Shown in pieces: positions 1 through 52,121 of a stretch of 64,000 nucleotides of DNA; position 1 is the stretch's first letter, and every line of letters starts with the position of its first letter. Source of the DNA: Selaginella moellendorffii (taxonomy: Eukaryota > Plantae > Lycopodiophyta). The notes beneath the pieces are model-generated. The model did not search any database, was not told where the DNA came from, and saw only the letters and a list, made by a program, of their open reading frames with translations. The DNA is taken from assembly GCF_000143415.4 (NCBI RefSeq), contig NW_003314292.1, forward strand, positions 737,325 to 801,324, given 5' to 3'. A program made the translations under genes and the position numbers.

Positions 1-149
1 ATCGGCTTGGATTCGATCCCGAACTCTATCTTGAACTCAGTCTCAAAGTTGGTCTTAGACTTGATCTCAAACTGAGACTCTTTATTATTTATGTCGTGCT
101 TTCGAGGATTGTTTAGCCTACAACACCTTAGGGAGTTGGTTCCTTACAA

Positions 150-315
150 CCTCGGACTCCATGTTAGGTCCATATCGAACTCCATCTCAAACTCTATCTT
201 AGGTCCATCTCAAGTCTATATTGACTCCATCTTAGACTCCATTTCAGGTCCATCTCAGGTCCATATCGAATTCCATCTCGGATTCCTTCTCAAACTCCTT
301 CTTGAACTCCTTCTT
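150..315. repeat. degenerate ~12-bp minisatellite (actccatctcag/ggtccatctcaa-like units)
   Basis: Repeated imperfect ACTCCATC/GGTCCATC units. Confidence 0.5.
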
Positions 316-2901: not shown

Positions 2902-4478
2902 TCACGCACACGCCTCCGTGTTCTCGTCGAAACCTGCGCACCGGTGGTGGATTGCAGTGTAGGGCGCCTCCGAATCAAGCTTGGGCTTCATGCAGCGCCA
3001 GACAACGCCGCAGTGCGGTGGCATGCCAAAGCGGATGGGATGCACCTTGACACGACCGGGGAACGCTGTGCCCAGCTCCACGATCGCCGGAGGCACCTGG
3101 GGCCGGAATTCAGGCGGCTCCTCAATGCACACAATGCCTGTTACTTCGAGCTGCGTCACACAGCTGCTGCTCACCACCAGCTCCTGCACAAACTCGATCT
3201 CGTCACTGTCCCAGCACGGCACCCGCTTGTTCGAGTAGGAGGTGTCAATGTGCACGCGCAGTGGCGCGTGCCTGCTGCTCCACCCCGCAAGGCTCAAGCT
3301 CTGAAACACAAAAACGAGTCCCAAGTTTGTAACTGGTACACAATATGGATACGATCCTTGAGAAAAAAAAATATATGTACCTTGATGGTGAGACGAGCAA
3401 TGTAAAGCGCCTCCAGGCCATGGAACGGCTCCAAGAGCTGTGCGAGGTTAACGGATCTGGGCTCGAAGTCGGCCGAATCCATAAACAGGTCGAGCTGCTT
3501 GATGCCACTGATGCTCGACGTCCTCAAAACAAACGGCTCGAGAATTAGCTCGACGTGGGCATTGCCTCGGAAGGTATTGGTGACCGTGAGCCTGTTGAGC
3601 TTGGACATGACCAAGCCCTGGATGATTCGCACTTGCCCATGCAGCTGCACCCATTCCACGTTGCACGTAGACGGCGAGAGCTCCACGCGGGGTACCGCGT
3701 TGACAAACATCCACCGGAGCTTGGGCATGTCGAGCGCGAGAGAAAATTTGGTAACGCTCCTGCCGCGGACCCTGCTGGCGCGAATCACCAGGCAGTCGAG
3801 GCTGTGACTCTTGAGCAAATGCGTCCCAGCAGACTCCACAAGCAGCTGGGTCAGCCGGAAGTAGACGAGCGAGGGGCACAACTCGAGGAGCTGCGTCGTT
3901 GTGGCCACGTCCAAGCGTGTGCGTATGAAGCAGTAGACAAGCGCGGGAAGAATTGGAGCCGCTGCCTTGGTCGTGAGCGGGCCACCAAGCTCGACACCAT
4001 CGTTGATATGGAGACACCGTAGCTGCTGGCAGGCGAGAATGCTGGACCAGAAACCATCCACACTGACGCTGATGGTAAGGGAGTGGAGGGTTTTTCCAAT
4101 CACCGGTAGCCAGTCAAGACAAGAGCGTGGCTGCTTTGAAAAACCTGTCAAAGACAGGGAGCGGAGATTGCTGCTGCTGCTGCTGCCAAACCAGGAAAGG
4201 AGACCCTGTTGCTCATGCTCACCGGACGATTCCAACCTGAAGTGCGAGACTAGCCTTGCCAGACGCGCCCACCTCTTGCTCACCAGGCTACACCAATACA
4301 ATTGGCGCGAGGAGGCGAGCAGGGACAGGATCCGGATGAGAACGTCGTCGGGAAGGTCGCCCATGGAGCACACATTGTTGCGCCTCTCGGCGATCCTCAT
4401 CCGATCGACCAAGAAGAGCAGCTCGCTGTGCTGAATCTCGTCCGGAAGATCATCCAAGGCGCTCCTCGGCCTTTTCAT
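2902..4478 (-). CDS. F-box protein with LRR-like C-terminal region, ~498 aa; exons 4478-3381 and 3300-2902
   Basis: F-box motif LPDDVLIRILSLL..LYWCSLVSKRW; GT-AG intron 3380-3301 joins two ORFs in frame; close paralogue at 13712-15268. Confidence 0.85.
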
Positions 4479-4539: not shown

Positions 4540-5015
4540 ATTTATAGGTTCGATACCAGCGAGGAAATGGATGAAGAGTTTCTTGAGGAGATTTTTTCAA
4601 GCCCAGACATGGAATTTGATCAGTCTTGGATGGAGAAGCAGCCACATGTCGAGCAGGAGCTAAGCAAGGGGCTGCCACCACCGCAGACCTATATTCCCCA
4701 ACAGCAATATGAATCTGGAATAAGCATGGATGGGGCGCGCACAAACACTTTCAGTGAATGATGTGTTGCAACACTTTTTTTTAAGGCAGAGTGTAATTTA
4801 AATTTTGCAAAATTTATAAATTTGTGAAGAAAAAACAGCTGGCGAAAATATACATTGCCACCGCAAGCACATCTATGGAATCACAATGTTATTGGAGCTA
4901 TACTACAACTACAAGATTTAATTAAGTAACATCTTTGACACAGGCAAGAGCTATTCCTTTAACACTAACATTGGCCTTGATCTCAAGACTTCGCCACCTC
5001 AAATGAAAATCATTT
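4540..5015 (+). pseudogene. double-MADS family remnant (acidic tail fragment followed by a frameshifted MADS-1 fragment)
   Basis: EEFLEEIFSSPD..QSWME..PPPQTYIPQQQYESG, then aaaacagctgg..ccgcaagcacatctatggaatcac..ttggccttgatctcaagac, both matching 44610-45600. Confidence 0.7.
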
Positions 5016-5129
5016 TTAAGCAGCTTTTTGCCACGTCATTGTTTGAATGCTACGTGGATAAAATCCGGCGGTGAGCATTGAACGCCGCGGATTTTGCCAC
5101 GTAATAGAAAAATTTATATAAAAATGCTT

Positions 5130-5737: not shown

Positions 5738-6522
5738 GGAAAGGAAAGAAATTTCTCTCGTTGAATCCCTCTTTTCGTCGCGGCGGCCATGGCTGTGTGC
5801 TTGCTTTTTGTTCCATCTAGAGAGCATTTTCTCTCCAATGTAACAGCGCGGGGTTCGATTCTCTCGTGTAGCAAGAAAAAATTTGTACTGTGGGGTCAGA
5901 CGGCCAGGATTGGGCCACGTTGACGCGGGGTCAGATAAATGGTTTTTCTTTTCAAATGTTTCTTAGTCGCGCATCTAACGGTTGTGACGGCGCCACGCAA
6001 GTGTGAGTGTGGTATATTTTGGGAATATCTCGAGTTTTTCTCTATCGTAAAACCTCTTGGGTAAAAACGTTATTTCTTTTGGGGTGTGTATAGCTACGCG
6101 CCTAGCGCTGCAAGTATTTTGCCGGCTGCGCAAGCGATAGATAGCGCTAGGGCATCGCGATTCGAGCGCTCCGCCAGGGACTCGAGGCGCCATCGCCAAT
6201 CCAGCTCCCGGAAGAAGGCGCAGCGACCTCGGCGAAATCGAGCAGCGAAATGGCTGCGGTTGGGGTTTTGGAATCGTCGTGATCAGATCAGCGCTGATGC
6301 CAGGTTCTTGTAGCTAGCCAAGCTCCCGAGCTTCCTAAATTTTGGTGTTTTGTCCAAGAGCTTGCAGATCGCCGCCGTGATTCATACACCAGAAGCTGGG
6401 GCTGGATCCCAAATCCGCTGTGAATGAATCGATCTGGCGGCATGGAATGGGTCTAGCCTAGTCTAGAGCGGGGTTTGCAAGGGGGCATTTCTTCGATACA
6501 GGCGTACGATCTCTTGCCAGGT

Positions 6523-8211
6523 ATGAAAAAGAGATGGAGAAACTTCTTTCCGGTCAAGAGCTCTTCATCAAAGATCGACAACTCTTCCGGCGGGGACAAC
6601 AAGCCCTCCAGCAATCCATCGCCACTCCACAGCAATGGTAGAAGCCAGGGATATGTAGCACAACAAGGAACAGTGGCTGTGCCGCGATGGAGTACTCCCA
6701 ATGACGTCATGAACTCCAATTCGATCACTCTTGGGATGGTGATGGGCAGCAAACAGGATCTTAGACACCTTCCTGGGTCGCCTGTAGATGGGCCGCCTGC
6801 GAATTCCTCTTCCGGATTTGAGCACTTACCTTCGTTCAAGGACGTGCCTAGCTCGGAGAAGCTGGCGCTGCTCGGGAGGAAACTCAAGCTTTGCAGTGTT
6901 CTATCTGACTTCACGGATCCCTCGAAGAACATCAAGGAGAAGGAGGTGAAACGGCAGACTTTGGTCGAGACGGTGGATTTTATAGGCTCTCCAGGGAACA
7001 TCAAGCTCAACGAGGTGGCGTACGAAGAGATCGTGAAGATGGTTTCGGTGAACTTGTTCCGGTCATTGCCACCTTCGCCGCATTCTAGCTCTGTCTCCGA
7101 AGGGCATGATCCGGAAGAAGAGGAGCCAACCATGGATCCGGCATGGCCTCATCTCTCACTCGTCTATGAGCTCCTCCTGAGATTTGTTGCGTCACCGGAA
7201 ACGGATGCAAAGCAGGCTAAGAGGTACATTGATCATGCATTCGTACTGAGGCTGCTGGATCTCTTTGATTCGGAGGACCCGCGCGAGAGAGATTACTTGA
7301 AGACCATCCTTCACCGGATTTACGGGAAGTTCATGGTCCACCGTCCATTCATCAGGAAGGCTATCAACAACATTTTCTACAGGTTCATCTTTGAGACGGA
7401 AAAGCACAATGGCATTGCCGAGCTTCTTGAGATCTTGGGGAGCATAATCAACGGCTTTGCGCTGCCACTCAAGGAAGAGCACAAGTTGTTTCTCGTCAGG
7501 GCGCTGATTCCATTGCACAAGCCGAAATGTGTGTCACTCTACCACCAGCAGCTTTCTTACTGCATCACTCAGTTTGTGGAGAAAGATATGAAGCTGGCGG
7601 ACACGGTGATCCGGGGCTTACTCAAGTACTGGCCGATCACTAACAGTCAGAAGGAGGTGCTGTTTCTTGCCGAGTTGGAGGAGGTTTTAGAGGCGACTCA
7701 AGCACCAGAGTTCCAACGCTGTATGCTGCCGTTGTTTCGGCAAGTCAGTCGCTGTCTCAACAGTTCGCATTTCCAGGTACATTTTGGTGTTTCCCCTTGG
7801 TTTCTTTTGGTTTGCGGTCTGATTTGCTGGTTTTTATAGGTGGCGGAACGTGCTCTGTTCTTGTGGAACAATGATCATATTATCAGCCTGGTGACTCAGA
7901 ACCGTCAAACAGTGCTGCCTCTCGTGTTCTCAGCATTGGAGAGAAACACCAGGAATCACTGGAACCAGACCGTGCACGGGTTAACTGTCAACGTACGGAA
8001 GATGTTTCTGGAGATGGACAAAGATCTTTTCGACGAGTGTCAGCGCAAGTATCTCGAGGAAGAGGAGAAGTCAAAGGGCCTGGAAGAAAAACGGGAGAAC
8101 AACTGGAAGCGGTTGGAAGCAGCTGCCGCGTCTAGGATCGAGGCTACGGGTGGTTCGAAGACCAACACGCTTGGTTTGCCGCTGGGTGTGATAGCTGTTG
8201 CTGGAAGCTGA
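6523..8211 (+). CDS. protein phosphatase 2A regulatory subunit B' (B56 family), ~541 aa; exons 6523-7776 and 7840-8211
   Basis: B56 motifs [53 protein letters not shown] and SSHFQ|VAERAL with a GT-AG intron 7777-7839. Confidence 0.95.
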
Positions 8212-11182: not shown

Positions 11183-11367
11183 GCGAACTTACATGGCGGC
11201 CGCGACCGGGATGTTCCTCATCACTGAAGCTCTGGGCAGGAAAGTAACCTTCAAAATGTGGCGGGAACGTGAACTTCTTGAGCTTGACAGGCCCTGGATG
11301 GTCCCCACGCCCCTGCTCTGCTTGATCCACTCGACGGCATGTAGACGGCAAGAGCTCCACGATTTTG

Positions 11368-11940
11368 TGGAAAACAACAGCTGGGAAATAAAAAATTTGC
11401 TAGAGTACATCTCCGATGCTGAGATAAGAAAGTGCCATGCTGAGATAAGAAAGTGTTGCGACCGCAAACGCATCTATGGAATCACGAAGAAGTTATGGAA
11501 GCTATACATACTCACGTCTACAAAGTCTAAACTTCTCTAGTAACTTCCCTGACACAGACAAATGCTATGTCTTCAACACCGAATCAACTTTGCCACCTCA
11601 AATGAAAATCATTGTCAAGCAGCTATCGATGCACTCGGTAACACAACAGGACCAAATGTCTTCGATCATCAAGGTATTTAATTTCTACACAGTTTCTTCT
11701 TTTAAGTTTTCCTTTGTTTAGAAAAAGACACCAGGGAAGAAAAAATCCGTTGAGACAAGAAAGAGTTGCTTCCGAAAGCTATGGAATCATGAAGAAAATA
11801 TGGGAGCAGACACATACTCATGGGTACAATACTTGATTTATCCTGTTACTTCCTGGACATGGTAAACACAAACATTGGCCTTGGTCTTGAGTCTTTGCCA
11901 TCTCAAATGAAAACTATTATCAGGCACCAATCGATGCGTG
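11368..11940 (+). pseudogene. double-MADS pseudogene copy
   Basis: [31 protein letters not shown]; second MADS exon after an intron; a ~21-bp internal duplication and frameshifts. Confidence 0.8.
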
Positions 11941-13711: not shown

Positions 13712-15268
13712 TCACGCACACAACTCCGTGTTCTCGTCGAAACCTGCGCACCGGTGGTGGATTGCAGTGTAGGGCGCCTCCGAATCAAGCTTGGGCTTCA
13801 TGCAGCGCCAGACAACGCCGCAGTGCGGTGGCATGCCAAAGCGGATGGGATGCACCTTGACACGACCGGGGAACGCTGTGCCCAGCTCCACGATCGCCGG
13901 AGGCACCTGGGGCCGGAATTCAGGCGGCTCCTCAATGCACACAATGCCTGTTACTTCGAGCTGCGTCACACAGCTGCTGCTCACCACCAGCTCCTGTACA
14001 AACTCGATCTCGTCACTGTCCCAGCACGGCACCCGCTTGTTCGAGTAGGAGGTGTCAATGTGCACGCGCAGTGGCGCGTGCCTGCTGCTCCACCCCGCAA
14101 GGCTCAAGCTCTGAAACACAAAAAGAGGAAGTTCTGGTACACAAATATAGATACGATCCTTGAGAAAACCAATATGTACCTTGATGGTGAGGCGAGCAAT
14201 GTAAAGCGCCTCAAGGCCATGGAACGGCTCCAAGAGCTGTGCGAGGTTAACGGATCTGGGCTCGAAGTCGGCCGAATCCATAAACAGGTCGAGCTGCTTG
14301 ATGCCACTGATGCTCGACGTCCTGCAAACAAACGGCTCGAGAATTCGCTCGACGTGGGCATTGCCTCGGAAGGTATTGCTGAGCGTGAGCCTGTTGAGCT
14401 TGGACATGACCAAACCCTGGATGATTCGCACTTGCCCATGCAGCTTCACCCATTCCACGTTGCACGTAGACGGCGCGAGCTCCACGCGCGGTACCACGGT
14501 GACAGACATCCACCGGAGCTTGGGCATGTCGAGCGCGAGAGAAAAGTTGGTAACGCTCCTGCCGGGGACCCTGTGGGCGCGAATCACCAGGGAGTCGAGG
14601 CTGTGACTCTTGAGCAAATGCGTCCCGGCCGACTCCACAAGCAGCTGGGTCAGCCGGAAGTAGACGAGCGAGGGGCACAACTCGAGGAGCTGCTTCGTCG
14701 TGGCCACGTCCAAGCGTGTGCGTATGAAGCAGTAGACGAGATTGGGAAGGATTGGAGGCGCTGCCGTCGTCGTGAGAGGGCCACCAAGCTCGACACCATC
14801 GTTGATATGGAGGCACCGTAGCTGCTGGCAGGCGAGAATGCTGGACCAGAAACCATCCACACTGACGCTGATGGTAAGGGAGTGGAGGGTTTTTCCAATC
14901 ACCGGTAGCCAGTCAAGACAAGAGCATAGCTGTTTTGAGGAACCTGTCAAAGACAGGGAGCGGAGATTGCTGCTGCTGCTGCTGCCAAACCAGGAAAGGA
15001 GACCCTGTTGCTCATACGATTCCAACCTGAAGTGCGTGACTAGCCTTGCCAGACGCGCCCACCTCTTGCTCACCAGGCTACAGCGATACAATTGGCGCGA
15101 GGAGACGAGCAGGGATAGGATCCGGATGAGAACGTCGTCGGGAAGATCGTCCATGGAGCACAGATTGTTGCGCCTCTTGGTGATCCTCATCTGCTCCACC
15201 AAGAAGAGCAGCTCGCTGTGCTGCATCTCGTCGGGAAGATCATCCAAGGCGCTCCTCGGCCTTTTCAT
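13712..15268 (-). CDS. F-box protein paralogue, ~495 aa; exons 15268-14180 and 14110-13712
   Basis: Highly similar to 2902-4478 with the same intron position; part of a segmental duplication 13120-15300 ~ 2240-4520. Confidence 0.85.
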   Translation of the reverse strand: MKRPRSALDDLPDEMQHSELLFLVEQMRITKRRNNLCSMDDLPDDVLIRILSLLVSSRQLYRCSLVSKRWARLARLVTHFRLESYEQQGLLSWFGSSSSSNLRSLSLTGSSKQLCSCLDWLPVIGKTLHSLTISVSVDGFWSSILACQQLRCLHINDGVELGGPLTTTAAPPILPNLVYCFIRTRLDVATTKQLLELCPSLVYFRLTQLLVESAGTHLLKSHSLDSLVIRAHRVPGRSVTNFSLALDMPKLRWMSVTVVPRVELAPSTCNVEWVKLHGQVRIIQGLVMSKLNRLTLSNTFRGNAHVERILEPFVCRTSSISGIKQLDLFMDSADFEPRSVNLAQLLEPFHGLEALYIARLTIKVHIGFLKDRIYICVPELPLFVFQSLSLAGWSSRHAPLRVHIDTSYSNKRVPCWDSDEIEFVQELVVSSSCVTQLEVTGIVCIEEPPEFRPQVPPAIVELGTAFPGRVKVHPIRFGMPPHCGVVWRCMKPKLDSEAPYTAIHHRCAGFDENTELCA

Positions 15269-15959
15269 CCCCAGTGTCCTACAATCTTGCCCTAAAATAA
15301 TTACACCCAAGTATATGCGTAGATTCTCCAATCTTCGGCGGAGGTTCGATACCTGCTCGGCGCATCAATGTTGCCGAGATCACGACTAGCTGTTTGTCTT
15401 TGATTTTGTTTGCAAGCTAGTACCATCAATTAAAGCCTTGCATTCAAGTATTGAGAACACCACCATTGCTTCTTGCTTCGGCTCAAAGCCTCTGCCATAG
15501 GACAGTCCATACTATGATAGAAAATCTTTGTGTTCACGTATGAAAATATAAAATATACCTTTTAATATCCTTAAGATATACCTTTTGATTGAGTACGGTT
15601 TTTACCAGTGAACTCCATTAATGACCTTGCTGCAAAATGTGGCTCCAGATAATGGAGTATATTGTCTTCCTTGTAAGCCTAATCTGTCCTTCAGTCATTT
15701 TAGCCGCTAAGGCGATCAGAAAGTTGATGCTCGAGCATGGAAAACTGAAAGTTACTCACGGGACCAAGAGCTAAAACACTTACGTTTGTCAAGAGCAGCT
15801 GTTGGATCCAGTCCAAACATTTCTGTGATGGGAATGTCGATCAGGACTGCAAGCATCGTTTAGAATTCACAGCAAAGAAATTAAAGCAAAAGGAAAACGA
15901 TTATACAATGCCAGCTCAGTGTCGATGTAGGCCACTTTTTACCATTATGTAAGCCCAAG

Positions 15960-16769: not shown

Positions 16770-17460
16770 CTGTAGAAAAAAAACAGCTGGGAAACAAAAA
16801 AACTCCACTAGAGTACATCTCCGATGCTGAGATAAGAAAGTGTTGCCACCGCAAGCGCATCTGTGGAATCACGAAGAAGTTATGGGAGTTATACATGCTC
16901 ACAGCTACAAGTCTAAACTTCTCCAGTAACTTCCCTGACACGGTGCTTTCAACACCAATGTTGGCCTTGATCTCAAGACTTTGCCACCTCAAATGAAAAC
17001 ATTGTCAAGCAGCTATGGATGCACTTGGTAACGCAACAGGGCCAAACTGGCGATATTAATCAAATGTCTCCGATCATCAAGGTATTTAATTTCTACATGG
17101 TTTCTTTTTAAGTTCTTCTTTGTCAGGGAAGAAAAAAATCCAGATAAGAGTACATCTCCTACGGTGAGACAAGAAAGAGCTGCTTCTGAAAGCACATCTA
17201 TGGAATCATGAAGAAAATATGTGAGTGTACACATACTCACTAGTACAATACTTGATTTATCCTGTTACTTCCCAAAGAGTACATCCTCAACACAAAAATT
17301 GGCCTTGATCTTAAGACTTTGCCACCTTAAATGGAAACCATTGTTAAGTAGCAATTGATGCACACGTTAAAGCAAGTCAGTGATAACCAAAAGCTGGCAG
17401 ATCATAACTTGAAAGGTTTAGAGCCAGAGGAGCTAAGATTCAACAAGGACTCGCTCTTGG
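16770..17460 (+). pseudogene. double-MADS pseudogene, 5' half (continues at ~41125)
   Basis: Both MADS exons and the intron present with indels; similarity to the intact gene stops at caacaaggactcg (~45310 equivalent). Confidence 0.8.
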
Positions 17461-24252: not shown

Positions 24253-27200
24253 TGTAGGAATAATGATGAACACGACAAGCAGTCCGAATCGTGATCAGAT
24301 CTCTGGTGATTTCTGATTTGATTGAAGTTGTATATATATATACAGCTATATATGAATCAATGTGTGTTGAAGTGAAATCTGTTGTTCTTGCTCCACTTTT
24401 CTTTCTTGGTATCGGAGCGCTGGTTTCTGAACTCTTTCTTCTCCTTTCTTTGTGCCTCACATCATGAGCTGCAGCAAAGTTGGATTGATCTTGCTTCAGG
24501 GAGTCACTGCCTTTGATGGGAGGAGAGGGTTCAACACTTGGTCCGAGAAAATGATGCGCGTGCTGCAGATGGAAGAACTCTGGGAAATCGTTTCACCACC
24601 AACAATCGCTGCAGATGCTCGTACGCGGCGAGCCCTTGCTACGTTGGGAGCTTCAACTTCAGTGGAAGGAGAAGTCGTGGATGAAGAGGCAATTCATGCC
24701 TCTGTTGCAGCAGCTCGACAACAGCTTGATCCAGGGGAACAAGCTGTGCTGGAAAAGAAGGAATCTCGAGCAAAAGGATTGATTCTTTCTAAGCTTGCAG
24801 ATGCCCTTATGATGCGTTTGCGTCATAAGTGTGCTTGTGAGATCTGGGCTCATCTCCACAACAAGTATGCTGTTCTTTCCCTCTCCAAGATTAGCATGGT
24901 CGAGACTTGCATTCGTGAGACCCGTTTTCATCCAGGCGAGAACTTTGAAGAGTTCCTCGCCAAGATGCAAGATCTGTGGATGGAGCTTGAAGGCAGTCCA
25001 GCAGCGTTCAACGAAAGCAAGAAAGTTCTGGCACTTTGCGAGGCCATGCAAGATTCTTCTTTTAGTTCTTTCGTCCCTACCGTTCGCATGATGTCGCTCA
25101 ACTTTGAACAAGCTGAGCAAACGTTACGCTCGGAGCTGGCTGCGAGAGGTTTGATTGTGGACTTTGATCAAAGGCCTTCCCATGTTTTGATCTCACAGTC
25201 TACATCAAATGCTTCTGCATCAAGCAATCAGTCAGGGACTGATTCAGCTCTGTGGGATGGAAATCATCGAGGCAGAGGAGGCCGCGGAAGAGGAGGACGA
25301 GGCAGAGGTTGCGGGTTTAGGGGAAATCCGCAGCAGCAGCAGAATTCAGGGAATTCTGGTAAAGAAGCAGCACTTCGGGATTGTTTTGTGGGCAAGAACA
25401 AACAGGAATGCTGGACCTGTGGGATGCCAGGGCACTACTCCAAGGATTGCCCAGTTGCAGCTTGGCTGCAGCGCATGAACATAGGGCTCGCAGCAAATGC
25501 TCAGGAAGGGGAAACACAGGAACTTGCGGCATCATCTGAGGTAGCAGTTCCAAACGTTTCTGAAAAACTGACCATCGATTCAGGTTCAGAGAGACACCTA
25601 ATGCAAAGCGGGTCGAACTTTGTGCAGTTGCGTGCTGCAAAAGGGAAGTGCATTCGTGTGGGAGATGGAAGCATTTTACCTGTTCGCGCAACTGGGGATG
25701 TGCGAGTTCCACTGGGAAGAAAGTCTCTGCTCTTGAAGAATGCGTGGTATGTTCCAAAGATAGTGAAGAATCTGGTTTCTGTAGCCAGGCTTACGGATGA
25801 AGGTCTGGATGTGAATTTCTCCAAACATCAATGTCAAGTTCTTGCAAATGGCCATCCATTACTGCATTTTCCCAGATGTGGTAACCTGTTTGAGAAGGAG
25901 ATAGCTTCTGGAGAAAAATCGAATGCTCCTGAGATATGCATGACTGCAGATAGCTCTCTCTGGCATTCTCGACTTGCACATGCCAATCCCCCTCTCATCA
26001 GGCGTATGCAGAAGCAGGAGCTTGTGGATGGCTTCAACGACCACGTTCTTCAAAGTTCAGCAAAATGTCACACTTGCATTCTTGGCAAGCAAACCCGTCG
26101 TACTTTCAAACCTGCTGTGACCAGAAGCACTCGTCCCTTGCAGCTCATTCACTCAGATGTTTGTGGACCCATGCGACTGTTTGCTCAGAATGGCACGAAG
26201 TATTTTGTGACATTTACAGATGATTTCTCCAGGCACACGGACGTCTTCTTTCTTTGTCACAAAGATGAAGTCTTTAGCAAATTCAAGCAATTCGTAGTAG
26301 AAGCCGAAGTGAAAACTGGTCAGAGGGTTGGTTGTTTACGTACTGATTCAGGAGGGGAATACGTCAACAAGTCCTTTCAGCAGTTCTATGCTGAACGAGG
26401 AATTCTTCATCAGCGTTCTTGCTCTCATACCCCTCAACAGAATGGAGTCTCTGAGCGCAAGAATAGGACAATCATGAACGCAGTTCGGTGCTTCCTTCAA
26501 GAATCAGGACTACCAAAATTCCTTTGGGCTGAAGCAGTTGGATCAGCTGTGCATATTCAAAACCTTCTCCCTCATTCTCGCAATCCCAACAAGATCCCAG
26601 AAGAGCTTTGGACTGGTCAAAGACAATCGGTGGTGCATCTCAGGCGTTTTGGTTGTTTAAGCTTTGCAAAAAGGGTGGATGAGCATCTTGGCAAGTTGGA
26701 GAGCAGAAGCAAGCTGGCCTTTCTTGTTGGATACGATTCCAATTCAAAAGGATATCGCCTGTACCAGCCTGGTAATCATCAAATTTTTGTAAGCACTGAT
26801 GTTTGTTTTGATGAAGGAACACTCTACAAAGATCATGTTCAAGAAGAAGGAAGCTCAGATCAGAACATGAACTGGACTCCAGAAGAATGGAGTTGGGATG
26901 GTGTTGAAGACGGTGATGAAGATGACGATGATCTGACAATCATCTATCCCTCATCTCCTTTAGCAGATGATCATCCAACACCAGTCTCTGGATCTTTTCT
27001 TCCTGAAGAACAGGGCGATGCTACTCATCGTGCACGAACTGGAGAAGTCGACAGGCTCACACGTGATCTACCATTCAATGTGGAGAACTATGGGCGGACA
27101 TCATCTGGACGATCAAGCAGAGCACCTCATCCCAAGCAATGGTCTTTTGCAGCAACAGAAATAGCTTCTGAACCAGTCAACTTTGAGCAGGCGATTCAAG

Positions 27201-28897
27201 CTCCTGATGCAGATAAGTGGATTTCAGCAATGCAAGATGAGTTGAATTCTCTTGATGAGAACCAGACTTATGACTTGGTGGAAGCTCCTGAAGGACGTGA
27301 AGTTGTTGGATCACGCTGGGTGTTCAAGCTTCACAGAAATCCTGATGGATCGGTACAGCGTTACAAAGCAAGACTTGTTGCTCAAGGATATTCACAAGTT
27401 CCTGGAGTGGATTTTGATGAGACGTTCTCACCAATTGTGAAGCAGACAAGTATCAGAATGCTTCTGGCTTTTACAGCGGAGTTTGGTTTGTGCGCACATC
27501 ACATGGACGTAAAAACAGCCTTCCTTAATGGGAACTTGAAGGAGGAGATATTTATGCGGCAACCCCCAGGCTTTGAGCTTTTTGGATCCGGTTGTTCCGA
27601 ACTCGTCTGCAAGCTTCGCAAGGCTCTTTATGGCCTTAAGCAGGCTTCCCGTCAGTGGTATGAATGTTTGGATTCTTTTCTTATGGATCTCGGTATGCAG
27701 AGGTTGAACAGCGATGGAAATTTATATCTGCTTCAGCAGGGTGATCACTTTGTTGTGATAGCAGTTTATGTGGACGACTGTTTGATTGTCAGCAACAATC
27801 ACACTGTTTTGAAGGATGTGAAGATCAAGCTTATGAACAGGTTTGTGATGAAGGACTTAGGAGCTGTGCGGCAGCTGTTAGGGATGGAAGTTGACAGGGA
27901 TGAAGCAGACAGGACAATCACCCTCACACAGTGCCAATATGTGAAGAAGCTTCTCAACCAGTTCAACATGACAAGTTGCAAATCCGTGGCTACACCAGTC
28001 GTCACTGGCATCAAGTTCACAAGCAAGATGGATGATTTATTTGATCAGCCCTCGGTCTACCGATCGCTTGTTGGAGGACTACTCTACCTCGCCAACATGA
28101 CTCGCCCCGACATCTCCTTTGCCGTTGGTCTCCTCAGCCGATACATGCAGTCTCCGAGTTGTTATCATTGGCAGATGGCGAAGAGAGTTTTGAGGTATTT
28201 GAAAGGAACGGCTGCTCATGGATTAGTTTACAAATGCTCAGGTCAATCCAAACTTGTTCTTCAAGCTTACTGCGATGCAGATTGGGCTGGCAACTTGGAT
28301 ACACGACATTCAACCTCCGGAATTTGCTGCATAATTGCCGGTGCTCCGGTTTCATGGGGAAGCAAGAAGCAAACGACAATTGCTCTTTCCAGTGCAGAAG
28401 CAGAATACGTAGCTGCCAGTACAGCAGCAAGGGAGATCATCTGGCTTCGTCGATTACTTGGAGAACTCAATCAACAGCAATCAGATGCGACCATTCTACA
28501 TTGCGACAGCAGAAGTGCAATCGCCATGTCAAAGAATCCTGTGTTTCATGCTCGTACGAAACATATAGACGTGCAGCATCACTTCATTCGCGAACATGTA
28601 GCAGCCGGAGATCTTCACCTGGAATACGTTCCTTCACAGTATCAGTTGGCGGACCTTCTAACCAAGCCACTTTTGGAGCTCACATTCATCAAGCTGAGGA
28701 ATCAACTTGGAGTGTCAAGCACACCCTCAGCTTGAAGGGGGAGTGTAGGAATAATGATGAACACGACAAGCAGTCCGAATCGTGATCAGATCTCTGGTGA
28801 TTTCTGATTTGATTGAAGTTGTATATATATATACAGCTATATATGAATCAATGTGTGTTGAAGTGAAATCTGTTGTTCTTGCTCCGCTTTTCTTTCT
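24253..28897 (+). mobile_element. intact Ty1/copia retrotransposon; 154-bp LTRs 24253-24406 and 28744-28897
   Basis: TSD GCCAA; LTRs differ at 1 nt; PBS TGGTATCGGAGC; PPT GAAGGGGGAG; termini TG..CT. Confidence 0.97.
24464..28735 (+). CDS. copia gag-pol polyprotein (1423 aa)
   Basis: CCHC knuckle CWTCGMPGHYSKDC, protease IDSGS, integrase HSDVCGP/RTDSGGEY/QNGVSER, RT YVDD, RNase H ADWAG..ADLLTK; no stops. Confidence 0.97.
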   Translation: MSCSKVGLILLQGVTAFDGRRGFNTWSEKMMRVLQMEELWEIVSPPTIAADARTRRALATLGASTSVEGEVVDEEAIHASVAAARQQLDPGEQAVLEKKESRAKGLILSKLADALMMRLRHKCACEIWAHLHNKYAVLSLSKISMVETCIRETRFHPGENFEEFLAKMQDLWMELEGSPAAFNESKKVLALCEAMQDSSFSSFVPTVRMMSLNFEQAEQTLRSELAARGLIVDFDQRPSHVLISQSTSNASASSNQSGTDSALWDGNHRGRGGRGRGGRGRGCGFRGNPQQQQNSGNSGKEAALRDCFVGKNKQECWTCGMPGHYSKDCPVAAWLQRMNIGLAANAQEGETQELAASSEVAVPNVSEKLTIDSGSERHLMQSGSNFVQLRAAKGKCIRVGDGSILPVRATGDVRVPLGRKSLLLKNAWYVPKIVKNLVSVARLTDEGLDVNFSKHQCQVLANGHPLLHFPRCGNLFEKEIASGEKSNAPEICMTADSSLWHSRLAHANPPLIRRMQKQELVDGFNDHVLQSSAKCHTCILGKQTRRTFKPAVTRSTRPLQLIHSDVCGPMRLFAQNGTKYFVTFTDDFSRHTDVFFLCHKDEVFSKFKQFVVEAEVKTGQRVGCLRTDSGGEYVNKSFQQFYAERGILHQRSCSHTPQQNGVSERKNRTIMNAVRCFLQESGLPKFLWAEAVGSAVHIQNLLPHSRNPNKIPEELWTGQRQSVVHLRRFGCLSFAKRVDEHLGKLESRSKLAFLVGYDSNSKGYRLYQPGNHQIFVSTDVCFDEGTLYKDHVQEEGSSDQNMNWTPEEWSWDGVEDGDEDDDDLTIIYPSSPLADDHPTPVSGSFLPEEQGDATHRARTGEVDRLTRDLPFNVENYGRTSSGRSSRAPHPKQWSFAATEIASEPVNFEQAIQAPDADKWISAMQDELNSLDENQTYDLVEAPEGREVVGSRWVFKLHRNPDGSVQRYKARLVAQGYSQVPGVDFDETFSPIVKQTSIRMLLAFTAEFGLCAHHMDVKTAFLNGNLKEEIFMRQPPGFELFGSGCSELVCKLRKALYGLKQASRQWYECLDSFLMDLGMQRLNSDGNLYLLQQGDHFVVIAVYVDDCLIVSNNHTVLKDVKIKLMNRFVMKDLGAVRQLLGMEVDRDEADRTITLTQCQYVKKLLNQFNMTSCKSVATPVVTGIKFTSKMDDLFDQPSVYRSLVGGLLYLANMTRPDISFAVGLLSRYMQSPSCYHWQMAKRVLRYLKGTAAHGLVYKCSGQSKLVLQAYCDADWAGNLDTRHSTSGICCIIAGAPVSWGSKKQTTIALSSAEAEYVAASTAAREIIWLRRLLGELNQQQSDATILHCDSRSAIAMSKNPVFHARTKHIDVQHHFIREHVAAGDLHLEYVPSQYQLADLLTKPLLELTFIKLRNQLGVSSTPSA

Positions 28898-41649: not shown

Positions 41650-42490
41650 CAAAAACAGCTGGGAAAAAAATTGTACATTTCCGAGGCTGCAAGCACATCT
41701 ATGGAATCACAAAGTTATTGGAGCTATACTATGGCTACAAGACTTAATTAAGTAACATCCTTGACACGGTCAAGAGCTATGCCTCAACACCAACGTTGGC
41801 CTTGATCTCAAGACTTTGCCACCTCAAATGAAAACCATTATGAAGCAGCTATCGATGCACTCAGAAACGCAGCAGGCCAAGCTGGCGAAACGTCTACGAT
41901 CATCAAGGTATACATCTTCTTTTAAGTTCTCTTTCTTTATAAAAAGACAGCAGGGAAGAGAAAAATGCCAATAGAGCCAATGCTGCGAAAAGAAAGAGCT
42001 GCTTCCTAAATCCCATATATGGAATCACCAAGAAAATATAGGAGCTACTTGATTCGTGTTACTTCCGGGACATGGTCCAAGTGTTTACATCCTTAACACA
42101 AACACAATTGGCCTTGATCTCCCAAGATTTTGCCACCTCAAATGGAACCCATTGTCAAGCAGCAATCGATCACACGTTGACGCAGCAGGGCCAAGGTTGT
42201 GATGATCACAAGCTGGCAGATGAGGGTTTAGAGCCGGAGGAACTCGCCACCACCTAGTATCCTCACCTTCATTGAGTTTCATAGACGGGGATTTTGGAGA
42301 TGGAATCGTTCAAGATGGGCAAGAAGTTGCCAATGGTTTGCAGCCGTAGAAGCATGGGTAGTTGCTAGGAAATGTGACTACCCTCGTCATATATTCTATA
42401 AATCTTGGATGGCAAATACTTTCAGACGATGTGTTTTTGGAGGAGATCACGTCGATCACGGATAGCACCATTGGCAACATTTTGGAGCTG
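41650..42490 (+). pseudogene. double-MADS pseudogene copy
   Basis: Two decayed MADS exons, the intron and a partial acidic tail, colinear with 44610-45650. Confidence 0.75.
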
Positions 42491-42679: not shown

Positions 42680-42951
42680 CGGAGCGCACTGGATGATCTT
42701 CCCGACGAGATGCATGAGCTACTCTTCTTGGTGGAGCGGATGAGGATCACCAAGAGGCGCAACAATCCGAGCTCCATGGACGATCTTCCCGACGACGTTC
42801 CCATCCGGATCCTGTCCCTGCTCATCTCCTCGCGCCAATTGTATTGGTGTAGCCTGGTGAGCAAGAGGTGGGCACAGCCGGCAAGGCTCGTCACGCATTT
42901 CAGGTTGGAATCGTCCGGTGAGCATGCGCAACGGGGTCTCCTTTCCTGGTT

Positions 42952-42984
<33 letters not shown>

Positions 42985-43950
42985 TCACAGGTTCCTCAAA
43001 GTGGCTATGCTCTTGTCTTGACTGGCTATCGGTGAATGGAAAAATCCTCCACTCCCTTACCATCAGCATCAATGTGGATCGCCATTCTCGCTACGGAGGC
43101 TCTGGAGACTATGGAGGGAGGTGCCTCCATATCAACGATGGTGTCGATCTTGGCGGCCCTCTCACGACCAAGGCAGCGGCTCTAATTCTTCCCGCGCTCG
43201 CCATACGCACACACTTGGACGTGGCCACGACGAAACAGCTCATCGAGTTGTGCCCACTCATATACTTCCCGCCGACCTATTTGCTCAAGAACCACAGCCT
43301 CCACTATTTGGGGATTCGCGCCCACAAGGGCCCCGGCTGGAGCGTTGCCAGCTTTTCTCTCGTGCTCAACATGCCCAAGCTCTGGTGGATGTGTACCTCA
43401 CGTGGAGCTCTCACTGTCTACGTGCAACGTGGAATGGTGGTGCTTCATGGGCAAGTTTGGATTGTTCAGGGCCTGGTCATGTCCCAGCTCAACACGCTCA
43501 CGCTCACCAATACCTCCTGAGGCAGTGCCCACGTCTAGAAAATTATCGAGCCGTTTGTCAGGAGGGCGAGCATCAGTGGCATCGAGCATCAGACAGGCGC
43601 CACTGCGTGTCCACATCGACGCATCCTACTCGAACAAGCGGGTGCCGTGCTGGGACAATGACGAGATCGACTTTGTACAGGAGTTCCGCAGCTGCGTGGT
43701 GCAGCTCGAAGTAACAGGCATTGTGTGCATTGAGGAGCCGCCTGAATTTCGGCCCCGGGTGCCTCCGGCGATCGTGGAGCTGGGCACAGCGTTCCCCGGT
43801 CGTGTCAAGGTGCATCCCATCCGCTTTGGCATGCCACCGCGCTGCGGCGTTGTCTGGCGCTGCATGAAGCCCAAGCTTGATTCGCCCTACACTGCAATCC
43901 ACCACTGGTGCGCAGTTTCGACGAGAACACGGAGTTGTGTGCGTGAACAA
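42680..43950 (+). pseudogene. F-box pseudogene (frameshifted paralogue, inverted relative to copies 1 and 2)
   Basis: LDDLPDEMHELLFLVERM..LPDDVPIRILSLL; multiple indels; expanded (CAG)n. Confidence 0.85.

Positions 43951-43952: not shown

Positions 43953-43986
<34 letters not shown>
43953..43986. repeat. (TG)n microsatellite
   Basis: Perfect dinucleotide run. Confidence 0.9.
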
Positions 43987-43987
<1 letters not shown>

Positions 43988-44544
43988 TTTTTTATGAATA
44001 CTTATTAACAATGGTTCGTATACAAGCCTGAAGCAAAGAATGAGAAATTGAGATCACATTTTTTAGCTCGCCCCTCGTCGGGAAGATCGTCCCCATGCAG
44101 CCACCTAATTTGACCTTGAAAGAAATGGACTTTTTTCACGACCATAAGACACGGCATCCCTCGATTATCAACGTTGGCCAGACAAAGTGAGACAGGAGCT
44201 GCGCAAGGGTGGCCATGCATCCATGAAAGGATTGGGCAGAGCGCTGTTGGCAAAGGATCGAGAGGCGGCCACGATGCTTGTCCTGAATTCGCATGGAAAG
44301 CGAGTGGAGGTTTTTGCCAATCGACCAAGGGACCAGCTCGGCGGTATGAGACATTTCAGTTGCGCAGAGAACACGATGCGGATGGATTAATTAACTATCA
44401 ACTAAACATAATAATAATACATTAATAAACATAAACATGCGATCTTCATAGATTTAAGGAAGATATCAAATCTTTGATTTTGCTAATAATTGAGGGAACA
44501 AGAATAAGGGTTTGTCCCCCAAACAACACACAAGGAAAATAACT

Positions 44545-45721
44545 ATGTCTCCGGTGATCAAGGTATTTCGTAACTTCACGTTTCACCTCTTATAAATGTT
44601 TCTTTGTAGAAAAAAACAGCTGGGAAACAAAAAATTCCACTAGAATACATCTTGGATGCTGAAATAAGAAAGTGTTGCCACCGCAAGCGCATCTTTGGAA
44701 TCACAAAGAAGTTATGGGAGCTTAACATACTCACGGCTACAAGACTCAATTTCTCAAGTAACTTTCCTGACACGGGCAAGAGCTATGCCTTCAACACCAA
44801 TGTTGGCCTTGATCTCAAGACATTGCCTCCTCAAATGATAACCATTGTCAAGCAGCAATCGATGCATTCGGTAACGCAACAGGGCCAAGTTAACCAAATA
44901 TCTCCTATCATCAAGGTATTAATAATTTCTAGATGGTTTTTCTTATAATTTTTTCTTTGTTGTTTCTCGTTCAGAAAAAGAGAGCAGGGAAGAAAAAAAT
45001 CCCGATAGAGTACATCTCCAATGCTGAGACAAGAAAGAGCTGCTTCCGAAAGCGCATCTATGGAATCATGAAGAAAATATGGGAGCTACACATACTCACG
45101 GGTACAATACTTGATTTCTCGTGTTACTTCCCGGACATGGTAAAGAGTTACACCCTCAACACAAACACTGGCCTTGATCCGAAGACTTTGCCACCTCAAA
45201 TGAAAACCATTGTCATACACACGTTAAAGCAGCAGGGCGATAACCAAAATTTGGCTGATGATCATAACGTGGAGGGTTTACAGCCGGAGGAGCTAAGATT
45301 CAACAAGGATTCTCCACCACCTCTAGTATCCTCACCTTCGATGAGCTCCATTGATGGGGAGCAACATAACTCTGGAAGCCTGGATGGGTGCGAGAAAACG
45401 TTTTCACTGGATGATGCCTTTCTGGAGGAGATCTTTTCAAGCCCAGAAAGCACTATTGACAATACAGAGTCTGGTCAGTCTTGGATGGAGCTCGTTGATT
45501 TTGACGAGTGTCCACCACCGCCAACCTATATTCCCCAGCAGGAATATGAATCTGGCATGGATGGCGGCGAGCAAACACTTTCAGTGGACAATATGCTTTT
45601 GGAGGAGCTCTTATTGATCCCAGATAGCACCATTGGGAACATGGAATTTATTCAGTCTTGGATGGAGCAACAGCCACCTGTGGAGTTTGATATTAACGAC
45701 ATGTACCTGGAAGTTCCTTGA
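44545..45721 (+). CDS. tandem double-MADS-domain (type I/SRF-like) transcription factor with acidic C-terminus, ~356 aa; exons 44545-44562, 44610-44915 and 44975-45721
   Basis: MADS1 [48 protein letters not shown]; MADS2 AGKKKIPIEYISNAETRKSCFRKRIYGIMKKIWELHILTGT; two phase-0 GT-AG introns (47 and 59 nt) give an uninterrupted frame. Confidence 0.8.
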
Positions 45722-46062
45722 GGACATTACAACACAATTTTGCGAATTGCAACATAGGCAGAGTGTAATTTATTTAGAGAGGGAAATTCCCCTTATGTAA
45801 CTTAGGAGCGTAATAGATATTTTTAAGGACTGATGAAGCTCGCTGTGATTGCCTTCGACGTTCTTGGTCACGGGTTTGAAAGACAGCAACCGCCGTTATG
45901 ATTGCAAAGAAAGGACATAAGGAACGTTTAAAGAACCACATCTCGATATTTTAGTACAGTATTAAAGGCCTGTTGCAAATGCCGATGCTGTGCTGTTGGA
46001 GTGAGAATCAGGTGGAAAAAATAATATGAAGATTTTCATTGTCTAAAATAATGTAATCATCA

Positions 46063-46119
46063 GTCATTGAAGTATAGTGGTAAGTATTTATGCCTGTCAC
46101 GCAGACGACGTGGCAATGG
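46063..46119 (+). pseudogene. tRNA-Asp(GTC) pseudogene lacking the T arm
   Basis: gtcattgaagtatagtggtaagtatttatgcctGTCacgcagacgac-tggcaatgg resembles plant tRNA-Asp with the TpsiC arm deleted. Confidence 0.7.
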
Positions 46120-47250
46120 TTTACTCTTTTATGTAGAGGACTGCCCTTTGGTAAAGTTGAGCTCTATTTTAACTAAGGTGATCTTGGTGGTGGGAACTAA
46201 TTCAACTGCAGCGACGTAAGTTGTATGAATTTTTCTGTATTCTACTACTTTATGTGGGTACTAATTAAAAATCTGCCATATTAGACAGCTGTTACATCTG
46301 ATCCGTCCATTCATGGTCTCTATGACAAAAGTGCTTGGTGTCGCAAAAACACTGAAGATCGTGGAATGACCCAGGAGCGCCAGATACCACCCGATCCATG
46401 CGCATCTGACTCCAGATCAGAAGGCTATTCGAGTAGCAGACTTCCTGAACGAGTGTCCTCTGAGTTAGATGTGTTCTTGGCTGCATAAATTTTTCCAAAG
46501 CTGAGAAATGAATCCACCAAAAAATAAAGCTGAGAACTTACCTTCGCTTGAAGCTAACAGAGCCCAAAACGCCATCCCCCAAGCTCGCAGCCACTCTAAC
46601 TCTAGTGCATACAAGACCAAATGCATCTTCTTTCACCGGGGTCAATGTGAAATGACATGTTCTTGCTGGGACTACTTTAAAAGAAAATAAAATCAACGTA
46701 ACTCTAATGTTAACTATGCGATGGATGTTTCCAACGTGCTTGTCCTCTCTACTCTTTTCCTGACGCCACTTATATTGGTCTAGTCGTCAAGATGGGTGCA
46801 ACTCGCAAGGGTCAGCACGCATTTCAGGTTGGAATCGTCCACAATCTCCTCTGGCAGTGAGCAGCATAGACCCAACTCGGCAGGGAATGACGTTGTCATT
46901 GGAGTTTAAAGATTCTTCCCGTTGATCGCAATGCTTCATTGGTCGAGCTCATCTCCTAGAAGAATCCACCCCATCTGTGGTAATCGCCACAATTATCTTA
47001 TTCAAGTCATGTTGACAAAGTTGATGATTCTCAATTTTAGCTGTATGCTGAAAATACTTCTAGTCACTAAACAAATTGTTTACATTATTATTATATTATT
47101 ATTAAGATCATGTAAAAAGACAATCGATACACTAGATTTTATTAGATAGTTTGCAAAATTTATCCAAGGCATGGACAGAATTAGCTATTGCCTTTGTATA
47201 AATGTCAAGGAAATTCTCAACAGAAAACATCAGTCAATTAATCTTTTCTA

Positions 47251-49023: not shown

Positions 49024-49719
49024 TTAAGCATCTCTCCAGGTGATGGACATCTGACCGTAGAGGGGGTCGCTGGAGCTAATGCCCAGCGCTTTCCACACAG
49101 CATCAGAGCCATCCACAATGTTATTCCGGCATGGTGGCTGCCAAGCATGAGGCTTGTCACAGCCCATTGTAGAATCACACTCGTCCACCACTTTGGCAGT
49201 GGTGGATCTCCCATTTGGAGCTGTGATACTGATGAACTTCAAGCACCGGGAGCCCCCGCTATACCATCCGGTTGAGAGAGCCACGACCCTCTCGGTGTTG
49301 GAGTGGAATTTCCCATCGCACTCCGAAGGATCTCCGCCATCGCCACCAGCTTGGAAGTCGTTGACAGTGAGAATTGCTTTGGTGCTCTGCGAGACTGGGG
49401 GCGAGCATCGATAGATCGGATAGTTTGTGTTGGCCTTGCAGCACTCGCCGCACTGGTGGGCCGAATTGCCCTTGAGAGTTCCACTCTGCTGGCAAGTTCC
49501 TGAGCCACCGCCACCGCCGCCGCCACTTCCAGCGCAGATGTGAGTTCCCAAATCCGGATCGTCTTGACAAGTGCGCCCCCCTCCACAGTAGAGCTGACCA
49601 TCGCAATCGTCGTTTGTGGAGCACGATTGCCCGCATCCCCTGGACTCGACGAGAAGATCACGAGAACATATCGAGAGGACGATCAAAACACGCACAATTG
49701 AGCCAATTCTTAAAGCCAT
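49024..49719 (-). CDS. kiwellin / ripening-related protein with N-terminal kissper-like domain (231 aa)
   Basis: Signal peptide; [25 protein letters not shown]; Gly linker; DPBB domain [41 protein letters not shown]. Confidence 0.92.
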
Positions 49720-49997
49720 TTGAATGCTTTGTGAATGAATGGATGTCTTGCTGTGATTATATATACTAAAGTTTGGTTTCTCTAACTTTGGGGAATCTTC
49801 GTGAGCAGCATCCCAGTCATTAAGGCACCGGTTTGACCAGGTCAATGGTAGTTGACTGGAGTGTTTCTCGGATTTCTACATTGGTTTTTTTTTCTTGAGA
49901 AAATAAAAGAGTTCTCGGCAAGAAAATAAGGATGCATTTGTCAAAAACTTAGGAGAAGAACCAAGCGATGCTCGTACAAAGCCATGGAGGATACTGT

Positions 49998-50908: not shown

Positions 50909-52071
50909 CTAGCTACCAAACTGTGCTAAGTTGATATCTTGTAGAGATATAGTTCCAGATCTATCCACATCAAGCTCTTGGAATTGTCTCACAATCGCCT
51001 CTAAGTCCTCTTTCTCGAGCTTGCCCATCTCTTTGAGCTTATACACCATATACTCGGTGAGGCTGCAAAACAAAGAACACCAAGATCAAACGAGTCGTTC
51101 TTACTAGCAAACGCTGGAAAGCTTCGAAATAAGACAGCCCACCTGAGAGCTCCGTCGTCGTCCAGATCCGCCGCCTCGAAATCCGAGTAAGTGATCTTCC
51201 TGGAGAGAATCCACTTGGTGAGCGAATGCTGCCTTCCCTCCGTGACAAGCTCCGCGATGTAGAGGACGAACTGCGCAACACTAACCGTGCTCATCAAGAT
51301 CCACACCACCGCAAAGATCCTCCCGCCGGCGCTAGTGAAGCTGCGATCGCCATAGCCCAGCGTCGTCACCGTCACGGTCACGCAGTAGAACGCATCCAGG
51401 AAGCTCATCCCCTCCAGCTTCACCAACACCGAGATCCCGGCTCCAAACAGCACCAAAACCAGCCCCGCCGCCACCGCCACCTTGCAGTGAACTCTCCGGA
51501 TCCTCGCATCGGTGTCGGTGTTCTTGTGATGGAGGTACTTCTCTCTTTTCTCGATCGCTCTCTCCAGCAGCCTCTCCTGCTTCTCCACCAGATAGTTTGC
51601 AGCGTTGCCGAGCAGCAATCCAAAGATCGCGAAGCCCACGAAGACGAACAGGCACGTCATGAGCTTGGCCGTCGCTGTGGCTGGAACCAAGTCGCCATAG
51701 CCGACGGTGGTCATGGTGACCACGCAGAAGTACAAGGCGTCGACGAAGCTCAGGGTCTTGGTTCCATGGAGCTCGTCCCTGACGTGGACGAAGCAGAGGA
51801 TTCCAATGGCGAGGTAGAGCGCGAGAATGAGAGCCGCGGTCTTGCCTGGAGAGTAGGATTTGGTGGTCATTCCAAACGCGGGCGTTGGGGAGATGTTCTT
51901 GGGCCTCATCTTCATCGCTCCACAGTCGGAGGAGGGAGCGCTCCTGGATCTTCGGAGCTTACCACAATTTGAGATGGTGGGCATCGCCGATTCCTCATCG
52001 TGGTCCTGCAGGAGTGGCTCCTGGAGAAGGATCTCGAGCTTGGATGGCCTCCTCTTGGGCTTGCTGTGCAT
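50909..52071 (-). CDS. TPK: two-pore (TPK/KCO) potassium channel, ~360 aa; exons 52071-51143 and 51062-50909
   Basis: 14-3-3-type motif RSRSAP, two GYGD pores, four TM segments, two C-terminal EF-hand-like loops. Confidence 0.92.
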
Positions 52072-52121
52072 TCTGTGTGAATTCACAACCCAAACCTATT
52101 TTCCGATCAAATGGATCATGT

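Follow-up and report, generated by a model that had tools for sequence, protein, structure and literature searches.

In the textbook account, MADS-domain transcription factors bind DNA only as dimers, each chain contributing a single domain, and the regulatory diversity of the plant members arises from partner choice. Plant type I MADS genes usually possess a single coding exon that encodes one MADS domain. The SRF and MCM1 proteins (PDB 1SRS/1HBX and 1MNM) share with the gene described here the basic N-arm, the KR of helix α-I, the GI(M/T)KK..EL..LT signature and the β hairpin. However, they have one MADS domain per chain and form dimers between chains, whereas the Selaginella gene is predicted to encode two diverged domains per chain. 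In Selaginella moellendorffii, Gramzow et al. 2012 described SmMADS20 as a type I gene with one exon, the domains "NMC" and no EST, for which the reading frame was extended 5′ of the MADS box to reach a start (PMC3442193). The same authors noted a 1-nt insertion in SmMADS21 and an "N-terminal extension" (PMC3442193). In their Table 1, only SmMADS14 and SmMADS15 are labelled M-alpha, and SmMADS20 is given as plain Type I (PMC3442193).

The locus under study lies in a 64-kb stretch of S. moellendorffii DNA, which was analysed as a whole (the window). A 262-residue open reading frame (44933-45721) exactly matches an NCBI protein of this species (P0003) from scaffold GL377596.1 of assembly GCA_000143415.2. 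This protein clusters at 90% with EFJ25544.1 (262 aa) and EFJ25738.1 (286 aa), both of which are named "type I MADS-domain transcription factor". On the basis of the exact protein and cluster match, together with a kiwellin-like neighbour, the locus is assigned to the SmMADS20/SmMADS21 group of Gramzow et al. 2012 (PMC3442193). Every public model of 262 or 286 aa includes just the second of the two MADS units described below, which is also the only unit called in all three annotated loci. The first unit is absent from all proteins of 56-434 aa in a collection of 5.8 billion clusters; a word search restricted to unit 1 (candidates of 56-178 aa) gave no match, and a search with exon 3 retrieved only the known 262/286-aa and SmMADS19 clusters. 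The gene is thus already known as a single-MADS type I gene, yet it most likely encodes two MADS domains as the result of an internal duplication.

Splicing of two phase-0 GT-AG introns from the ATG at 44545 onwards gives an open reading frame of 356 residues (CDS of 1071 nt; Table 1). The unit SP(V/I)IK / intron / KK(T/R)AGK.KIP.EYI ... TLPPQM is present twice in this one frame, and the two units share 76% nucleotide identity over 275 nt (self-BLAST) and about 62% amino acid identity. The exons have a GC content of 0.42-0.46, compared to 0.32 and 0.24 for the AT-rich introns; AT-rich introns are the expectation in plants. Intron 1 varies between copies of the gene by a 1-nt indel and substitutions, with GT and AG retained. 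The original prediction had claimed two MADS units in a single spliced frame and a repeated acidic tail motif; the sequence, the introns and the 356-residue frame indeed read as described, and the tail motif recurs with 74% nucleotide identity (self-BLAST). With three exons and two MADS domains, the model departs from the usual type I layout, and it also differs from the published SmMADS20/21 models, which have one exon and one MADS domain. As far as gene structure alone is concerned, one gene encoding two MADS domains is the best-supported model, and we hold it with fairly high confidence.

Table 1. Features of the locus and its surroundings (positions are those of the window)
Feature	Position	Strand	Remarks
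F-box-like ORFs/pseudogenes	3294-4478; 13712-15331; 42681-43950	-; -; +	two ORFs and a degenerate third copy
Decayed fragment E	4552..5025	+	pieces of MADS unit and tail
PP2A B56 regulatory subunit	6475-7839	+	
Decayed copy D of two-unit locus	11364..11935	+	
Decayed copy C of two-unit locus	16771..17452	+	80% identical to 44605-45312; stops, 10-nt deletion
Copia LTR retrotransposon	24452-28735	+	uninterrupted 1427-aa gag-pol ORF (RVT_2, rve, gag_pre-integrs, Retrotran_gag_2)
Decayed copy B of two-unit locus	41689..42480	+	frameshifts and stops
5′ proximal region	44451..44522	+	two blocks common with the SmMADS19 upstream region (L002 alignment)
Upstream block 1	about 44451-44471		GATTTAAGG..AAGATAT
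Upstream block 2	44505-44522		TAAGGGTTTGTCCCCCAA; common motif also given as TAAGGGWTTGTCCCCC
Exon 1	44545..44562	+	mini-exon with start codon, MSPVIK, six codons; identical in L001 and L003
Intron 1	44563..44609	+	47 nt, GT..AG, phase 0, GC 0.32
Exon 2	44610..44915	+	102 codons; MADS unit 1 (LTAT) and post-MADS TLPPQM segment
Duplicated mini-exon relic within exon 2	44898-44915	+	ATA TCT CCT ATC ATC AAG
Intron 2	44916..44974	+	59 nt, GT..AG, phase 0, GC 0.24; duplicate of intron 1
Exon 3	44975..45721	+	MADS unit 2, Pro/Ser-rich region, two acidic/aromatic motifs, stop
MADS unit 2 in exon 3	about 44975-45274	+	
C-terminal motif copy 1	45378..45491	+	LDDAFLEEIFSSPESTI..QSWME
C-terminal motif copy 2	45555..45668	+	VDNMLLEELLLIPDSTI..QSWME
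Stop codon TGA	45719-45721	+	
Kiwellin-like gene (KWL1)	49024-49845	-	
Two-pore potassium-channel-like ORF	51001-52086	-	

We propose, with a probability of roughly 0.6, that the locus is a single type I gene of the SmMADS20/21 group whose 5′ coding segment was duplicated internally and which yields a two-MADS product. The start codon, the six-codon mini-exon, the short intron and the MADS-box exon to about codon 103 would have been duplicated inside the gene. As the duplicate runs from the ATG to an in-frame end, the outcome would be a gene with three exons, a single promoter and a single 3′ end. The predicted 356-residue product would consist of unit 1, a linker of about 40 residues, unit 2, a Pro/Ser-rich region and two acidic/hydrophobic C-terminal motifs.

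The gene was compared with two loci of GL377586.1 (L001 and L003, the latter being SmMADS21) and with SmMADS19 (L002). The window gene, L001 and L003 diverge by 2-3%, and the ATG, the four splice sites and the 356-residue frame are kept in all three. At the position corresponding to the start of unit 2, these intact copies have ATA, and the decayed copies (C and D of the window, and those upstream in L001 and L003) read ATG TCT CCG ATC ATC AAG gt. The duplicated segment has the start codon as its first codon and carries along essentially no upstream sequence, and the relic mini-exon directly abuts, in frame, a stretch with homology to unit 2's post-MADS region. Since the duplication starts at the ATG, unit 2 would have brought neither 5′ flank nor promoter, and its own start was lost in the intact copies.

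In L003, an additional C right after the intronic ATG (the equivalent of 44933) shifts this ATG out of frame, so that the public model of L003 has its start at MHSV, within unit 1, and runs on through intron 2. Owing to this extra C, exon 2, intron 2 and exon 3 are read as an unbroken open reading frame of 370 aa (L003:7749-8858). A two-MADS protein would therefore be encoded in L003 with or without splicing of intron 2, which also accounts for the "N-terminal extension" of EFJ25738.1. The published extension of SmMADS20/21 corresponds to intron 2 together with the last part of a complete MADS unit upstream, which a conserved mini-exon and intron connect to the start codon at 44545. The stretch around ATG 44933 tolerates indels, as an intron does.

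These differences among copies bear on the reading in which the public annotation is correct, namely that only unit 2 is translated from ATG 44933 (262 aa) and that unit 1 is an untranslated relic or leader. The NCBI/JGI models P0003 and P0001 exist, and ATG 44933 is conserved in the window and L001. However, this ATG sits within the T-rich intron 2 and is out of frame in L003 owing to the extra C, and the N-terminus that it would provide (MVFLIIFSLLFLVQ) derives from a T-rich tract (GC 0.24) with homology to both intron 1 and the intron of SmMADS19. Moreover, purifying selection on unit 1 equals that on unit 2, and the promoter-proximal motifs are found upstream of exon 1 only. We consider translation of unit 2 alone very improbable. 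Judged from sequence, the public models of 262 or 286 aa are mis-annotations, with a start placed either within intron 2 or at the end of unit 1. The published SmMADS20 and SmMADS21 gene models would thereby be corrected for a complete upstream MADS unit that was missed, and the puzzles of the "N-terminal extension" and the "1-nt insertion" of 2012 would be accounted for.

Alternatively, the locus might give two products, either by retention of intron 2 or by separate transcription of the units, in which case unit 1 would be a short MADS-only protein and possibly a dominant-negative partner. Intron retention is common in plants, and a retained intron 2 in the window gene gives an in-frame stop 10 codons in (ORF 44652..44948). 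Nevertheless, unit 2 has neither a promoter sequence of its own nor a start conserved in frame, and in L003 the retained intron 2 itself yields a fused two-MADS frame, which makes two products scarcely probable. Altogether, the comparison suggests that the single two-MADS spliced frame is the only reading that fits all three intact copies.

The paralog SmMADS19 (EFJ26274.1/EFJ14572.1) shares the MSP.IK mini-exon, the phase-0 intron, the KKTAGKKKIP exon, the TLPPQM segment, the acidic motif and the 5′ motifs. Its sequence runs ATG TCG CCA TCA ATC AAG, followed by a gt...ag intron and then AAA AAA ACA GCC GGA AAG AAG AAA ATC CCA, which reads MSPSIK, intron, KKTAGKKKIP. This same architecture indicates that exon 1 and intron 1 are ancestral in the subfamily, and the shared layout of mini-exon, intron and MADS exon argues that the exon-intron reading of the window gene is not due to chance. 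SmMADS19 differs in having only one MADS unit and one C-terminal motif, which would represent the layout before the internal duplications.

Upstream of the start codon, two blocks are common to the window gene and SmMADS19. The coding dS between SmMADS20-type genes and SmMADS19 exceeds 2 and is saturated, yet these blocks are conserved. The motif GGGWTTGTCCCCC has a single occurrence in the 64-kb window (44508-44520), and the shared 5′ motifs were found only upstream of exon 1, with none upstream of unit 2. The blocks may be putative promoter or 5′UTR elements, and possibly represent a shared cis-element. In SmMADS19, the conserved upstream block (L002:7883-7965) is preceded by the palindrome TTGTCCCCCCCATGGGGGGACAA. 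A (GT)n microsatellite lies about 560 bp upstream of the start codon of the window gene (43958-43990).

Comparison of unit 1 against unit 2 gave a dN/dS of 0.28 overall and 0.19 in the MADS core, with a dS of 0.74-0.89. When the amino acid changes were polarised with SmMADS19, nine fell in unit 1 and eight in unit 2. The near-equal numbers of changes and the low dN/dS argue that unit 1 evolved as constrained coding sequence and is no relic. In simulations at 0.37 substitutions per site, which ignored indels, a neutral unit of 306 nt stayed free of stops in about 6% of runs; copy C, at about 20% divergence, has already acquired stops and a frameshift in both of its units. The substitution pattern is that of purifying selection acting on each unit over the long term. 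Between the three intact copies, eight nonsynonymous and two synonymous changes are found in the MADS units, giving an omega of about 1 on small numbers. Over the whole coding sequence of these copies, dN/dS is about 0.5, with about 0.25-0.4 in the tail and a dS of 0.02-0.03. These values would fit a recent relaxation, or else rapid evolution, in the DNA-binding parts.

The eight-to-two ratio in the MADS units also speaks for a silent, recently dead or dying member of the cluster, whose reading frame was once functional and is open only because the divergence (dS 0.02-0.03) is recent. Four decayed copies in the same 64 kb, and more in L001 and L003, are in line with this. So is the expression record: no RNA was detected in any run, no EST is known (PMC3442193), and the expression of SmMADS19/20 was doubted by Gramzow et al. 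(PMC3442193). When about 12% of each of three RNA-seq runs of the species from 2026 was sampled, in which the presence of the organism was unconfirmed by a control stretch, no read fell on 44100-46200. A search of the record found no RNA-type sequencing run with the sequence, and fourteen probable RNA assemblies of the species contain next to none of the words of the locus. One contig (X1) that aligned to 44100-46200 is unspliced genomic DNA of an L001-type allele. By contrast, the indels among the three intact copies number four in about 307 nt of intron and flank and zero in 1071 nt of exon, and the tail still shows a dN/dS of about 0.25-0.4. Furthermore, type I MADS genes of flowering plants act mainly in female gametophytes, embryos and seeds (PMC3442193), and expression of type I genes is typically confined to gametophytes or embryos, tissues that the sampled runs may miss; that no reads turned up therefore says little about whether the gene is dead. 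Taken together, we regard a silent, dead or dying gene as possible and on the whole unlikely, and retain the two-MADS gene as the preferred reading.

In profile searches, both units matched the MADS family. The expected two matches to Pfam PF00319 (SRF-TF) in exons 2 and 3 were obtained, although at unequal strength: unit 2 scored 31.1 bits, above the gathering cut-off of 26, whereas unit 1 scored 17.1 bits (E 0.0039), under this cut-off. The matches cover only positions 1-32 of the 48 profile positions, and the hairpin region is divergent. Unit 1 bears odd residues, with His in place of the conserved Phe of TFSKR and LTAT in place of LTGT. No K-box or other family was found in exons 2 and 3 by Pfam at E up to 1, PF00319 being the only match. 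Searching the PDB by phmmer, we found that unit 1 best matches SRF (1HBX/1SRS, E 1.2e-4) over 64 residues including the β hairpin, and unit 2 best matches MCM1 (1MNM, E 3.6e-6) and SRF (E about 4e-6). The MEF2 chains gave weaker matches (E 1e-2 to 1e-4, versus 1e-4 to 4e-6 for SRF/MCM1), and plant MIKC structures were not among the PDB matches of either unit. A HMMER search with unit 2 against 1.84 billion representatives retrieved only 60 proteins at E <= 1e-3, mostly fungal Mcm1-like. The earlier suggestion of SRF/Mcm1-like rather than MIKC units thus agrees with SRF and MCM1 ranking top in the PDB, with the weaker MEF2 matches and with the lack of a K-box. As indicated by these matches, the SRF/Mcm1-like character is that of the published "type I" class.

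A structural model was predicted by AlphaFold2 from the continuous frame of L003 (L003:7749-8414; 222 aa), which comprises unit 1, 20 intron-encoded residues and unit 2. The linker in this proxy is read-through of intron 2, unlike that of the spliced 356-residue protein, and MAFFT put all homologues on unit 1, leaving unit 2 without alignment depth. Both cores were predicted with pLDDT > 90 and residues 85-131 with pLDDT < 50, at a pTM of 0.67. Both units have the MADS fold order α-β-β-α, with a long helix α-I, a two-stranded hairpin and helix α-II; these elements are H17-42, E45-51, E58-62 and H74-87 in unit 1, and H139-164, E167-174, E179-184 and H196-208 in unit 2. Structural similarity search using VIA-align revealed MEF2, MCM1 and SRF as the top matches of the model, with Z of 4.4-5.1 and a TM by target of about 0.6. 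Single MEF2, MCM1 or SRF chains align to ranges of the model that draw on both units, e.g. 5..211, which implies that the units are packed together in the model. The pTM of 0.67 was judged to exceed the expectation for two independent 75-residue domains on a floppy linker. The compact arrangement in the model is consistent with an intramolecular MADS-like pseudo-dimer, without being proof of it.

If the gene is expressed, one chain would bear both halves of a MADS dimer. In the likeliest arrangement, the two units would form an SRF-like pseudo-dimer within the chain and sit on a CArG-like site, with the C-terminal motifs recruiting the transcription machinery. Splicing, expression, intramolecular dimerization, DNA binding and the role of the tail as an activation domain are all inferred; the pTM of 0.67 and the alignments spanning both units are the backing for an intramolecular pseudo-heterodimer. 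A stronger version, in which a natural single-chain pseudo-heterodimer binds an asymmetric CArG-like site as a monomer, partner-free, in an unsampled reproductive or gametophytic tissue, is doubtful. If true, such tethering of two diverged MADS domains would make one "heterodimer" permanent in cis and would constitute a natural experiment in the evolution of dimer specificity and half-site asymmetry; the negative RNA searches limit the value of the finding.

Two MADS domains in one protein are unusual for the family. Four of the 60 library matches bear two PF00319 domains: Hibiscus KAE8678661.1, Nymphaea KAF3787359.1, Tulasnella KAG9024322.1 and the S. cerevisiae strain model CAD6644538.1. In addition, a survey of almond lists PdMADS15 with two MADS domains (PMC9601849). 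All of these belong to unrelated lineages and are uncharacterised automatic models that could be fused tandem genes. Part of the yeast model exactly matches the fragment of MCM1 in the crystal structure (1MNM), and hints that CAD6644538.1 is a merged gene pair. Text searches of the literature found no paper characterising a two-MADS protein. As unit 2 lost its start codon and promoter, the Selaginella case appears better supported as a true fusion than these automatic models, while being equally a prediction.

The window also contains several decayed copies of the two-unit locus. Because these carry two units, the two-unit architecture appears older than the local amplification, and the second mini-exon of copy C keeps the ATG. 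A processed-pseudogene origin of the decayed copies was ruled out, as intron 2 is retained. The pattern is that of a birth-and-death cluster in which most copies are dead, so that the lycophyte type I family would include a structurally dynamic cluster with several dead copies. F-box-like genes are found beside the MADS copies: each F-box copy of the window adjoins a two-MADS copy, and L001:11408-12789 bears the same F-box gene. From their arrangement, the MADS and F-box genes appear to have been duplicated together as a block, with differing orientations.

Between the decayed MADS copies and the intact gene lies a Copia element that looks young and possibly active. The gene is not part of this element or its LTRs, as self-BLAST of 41-50.5 kb revealed no similarity to the region of the element. 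Compared with the other intact copies, the window locus is syntenic with L003, having the same decayed copy upstream and, downstream, the same kiwellin-like gene and ribosomal S13 gene. No counterpart of the intact L001-type copy is present in the window, where pieces of the L001 flanks are found at 3-17 kb in rearranged order. The differences between L001 and the window point to structural differences between haplotypes or to assembly problems, as had been suspected by Gramzow et al. (PMC3442193).
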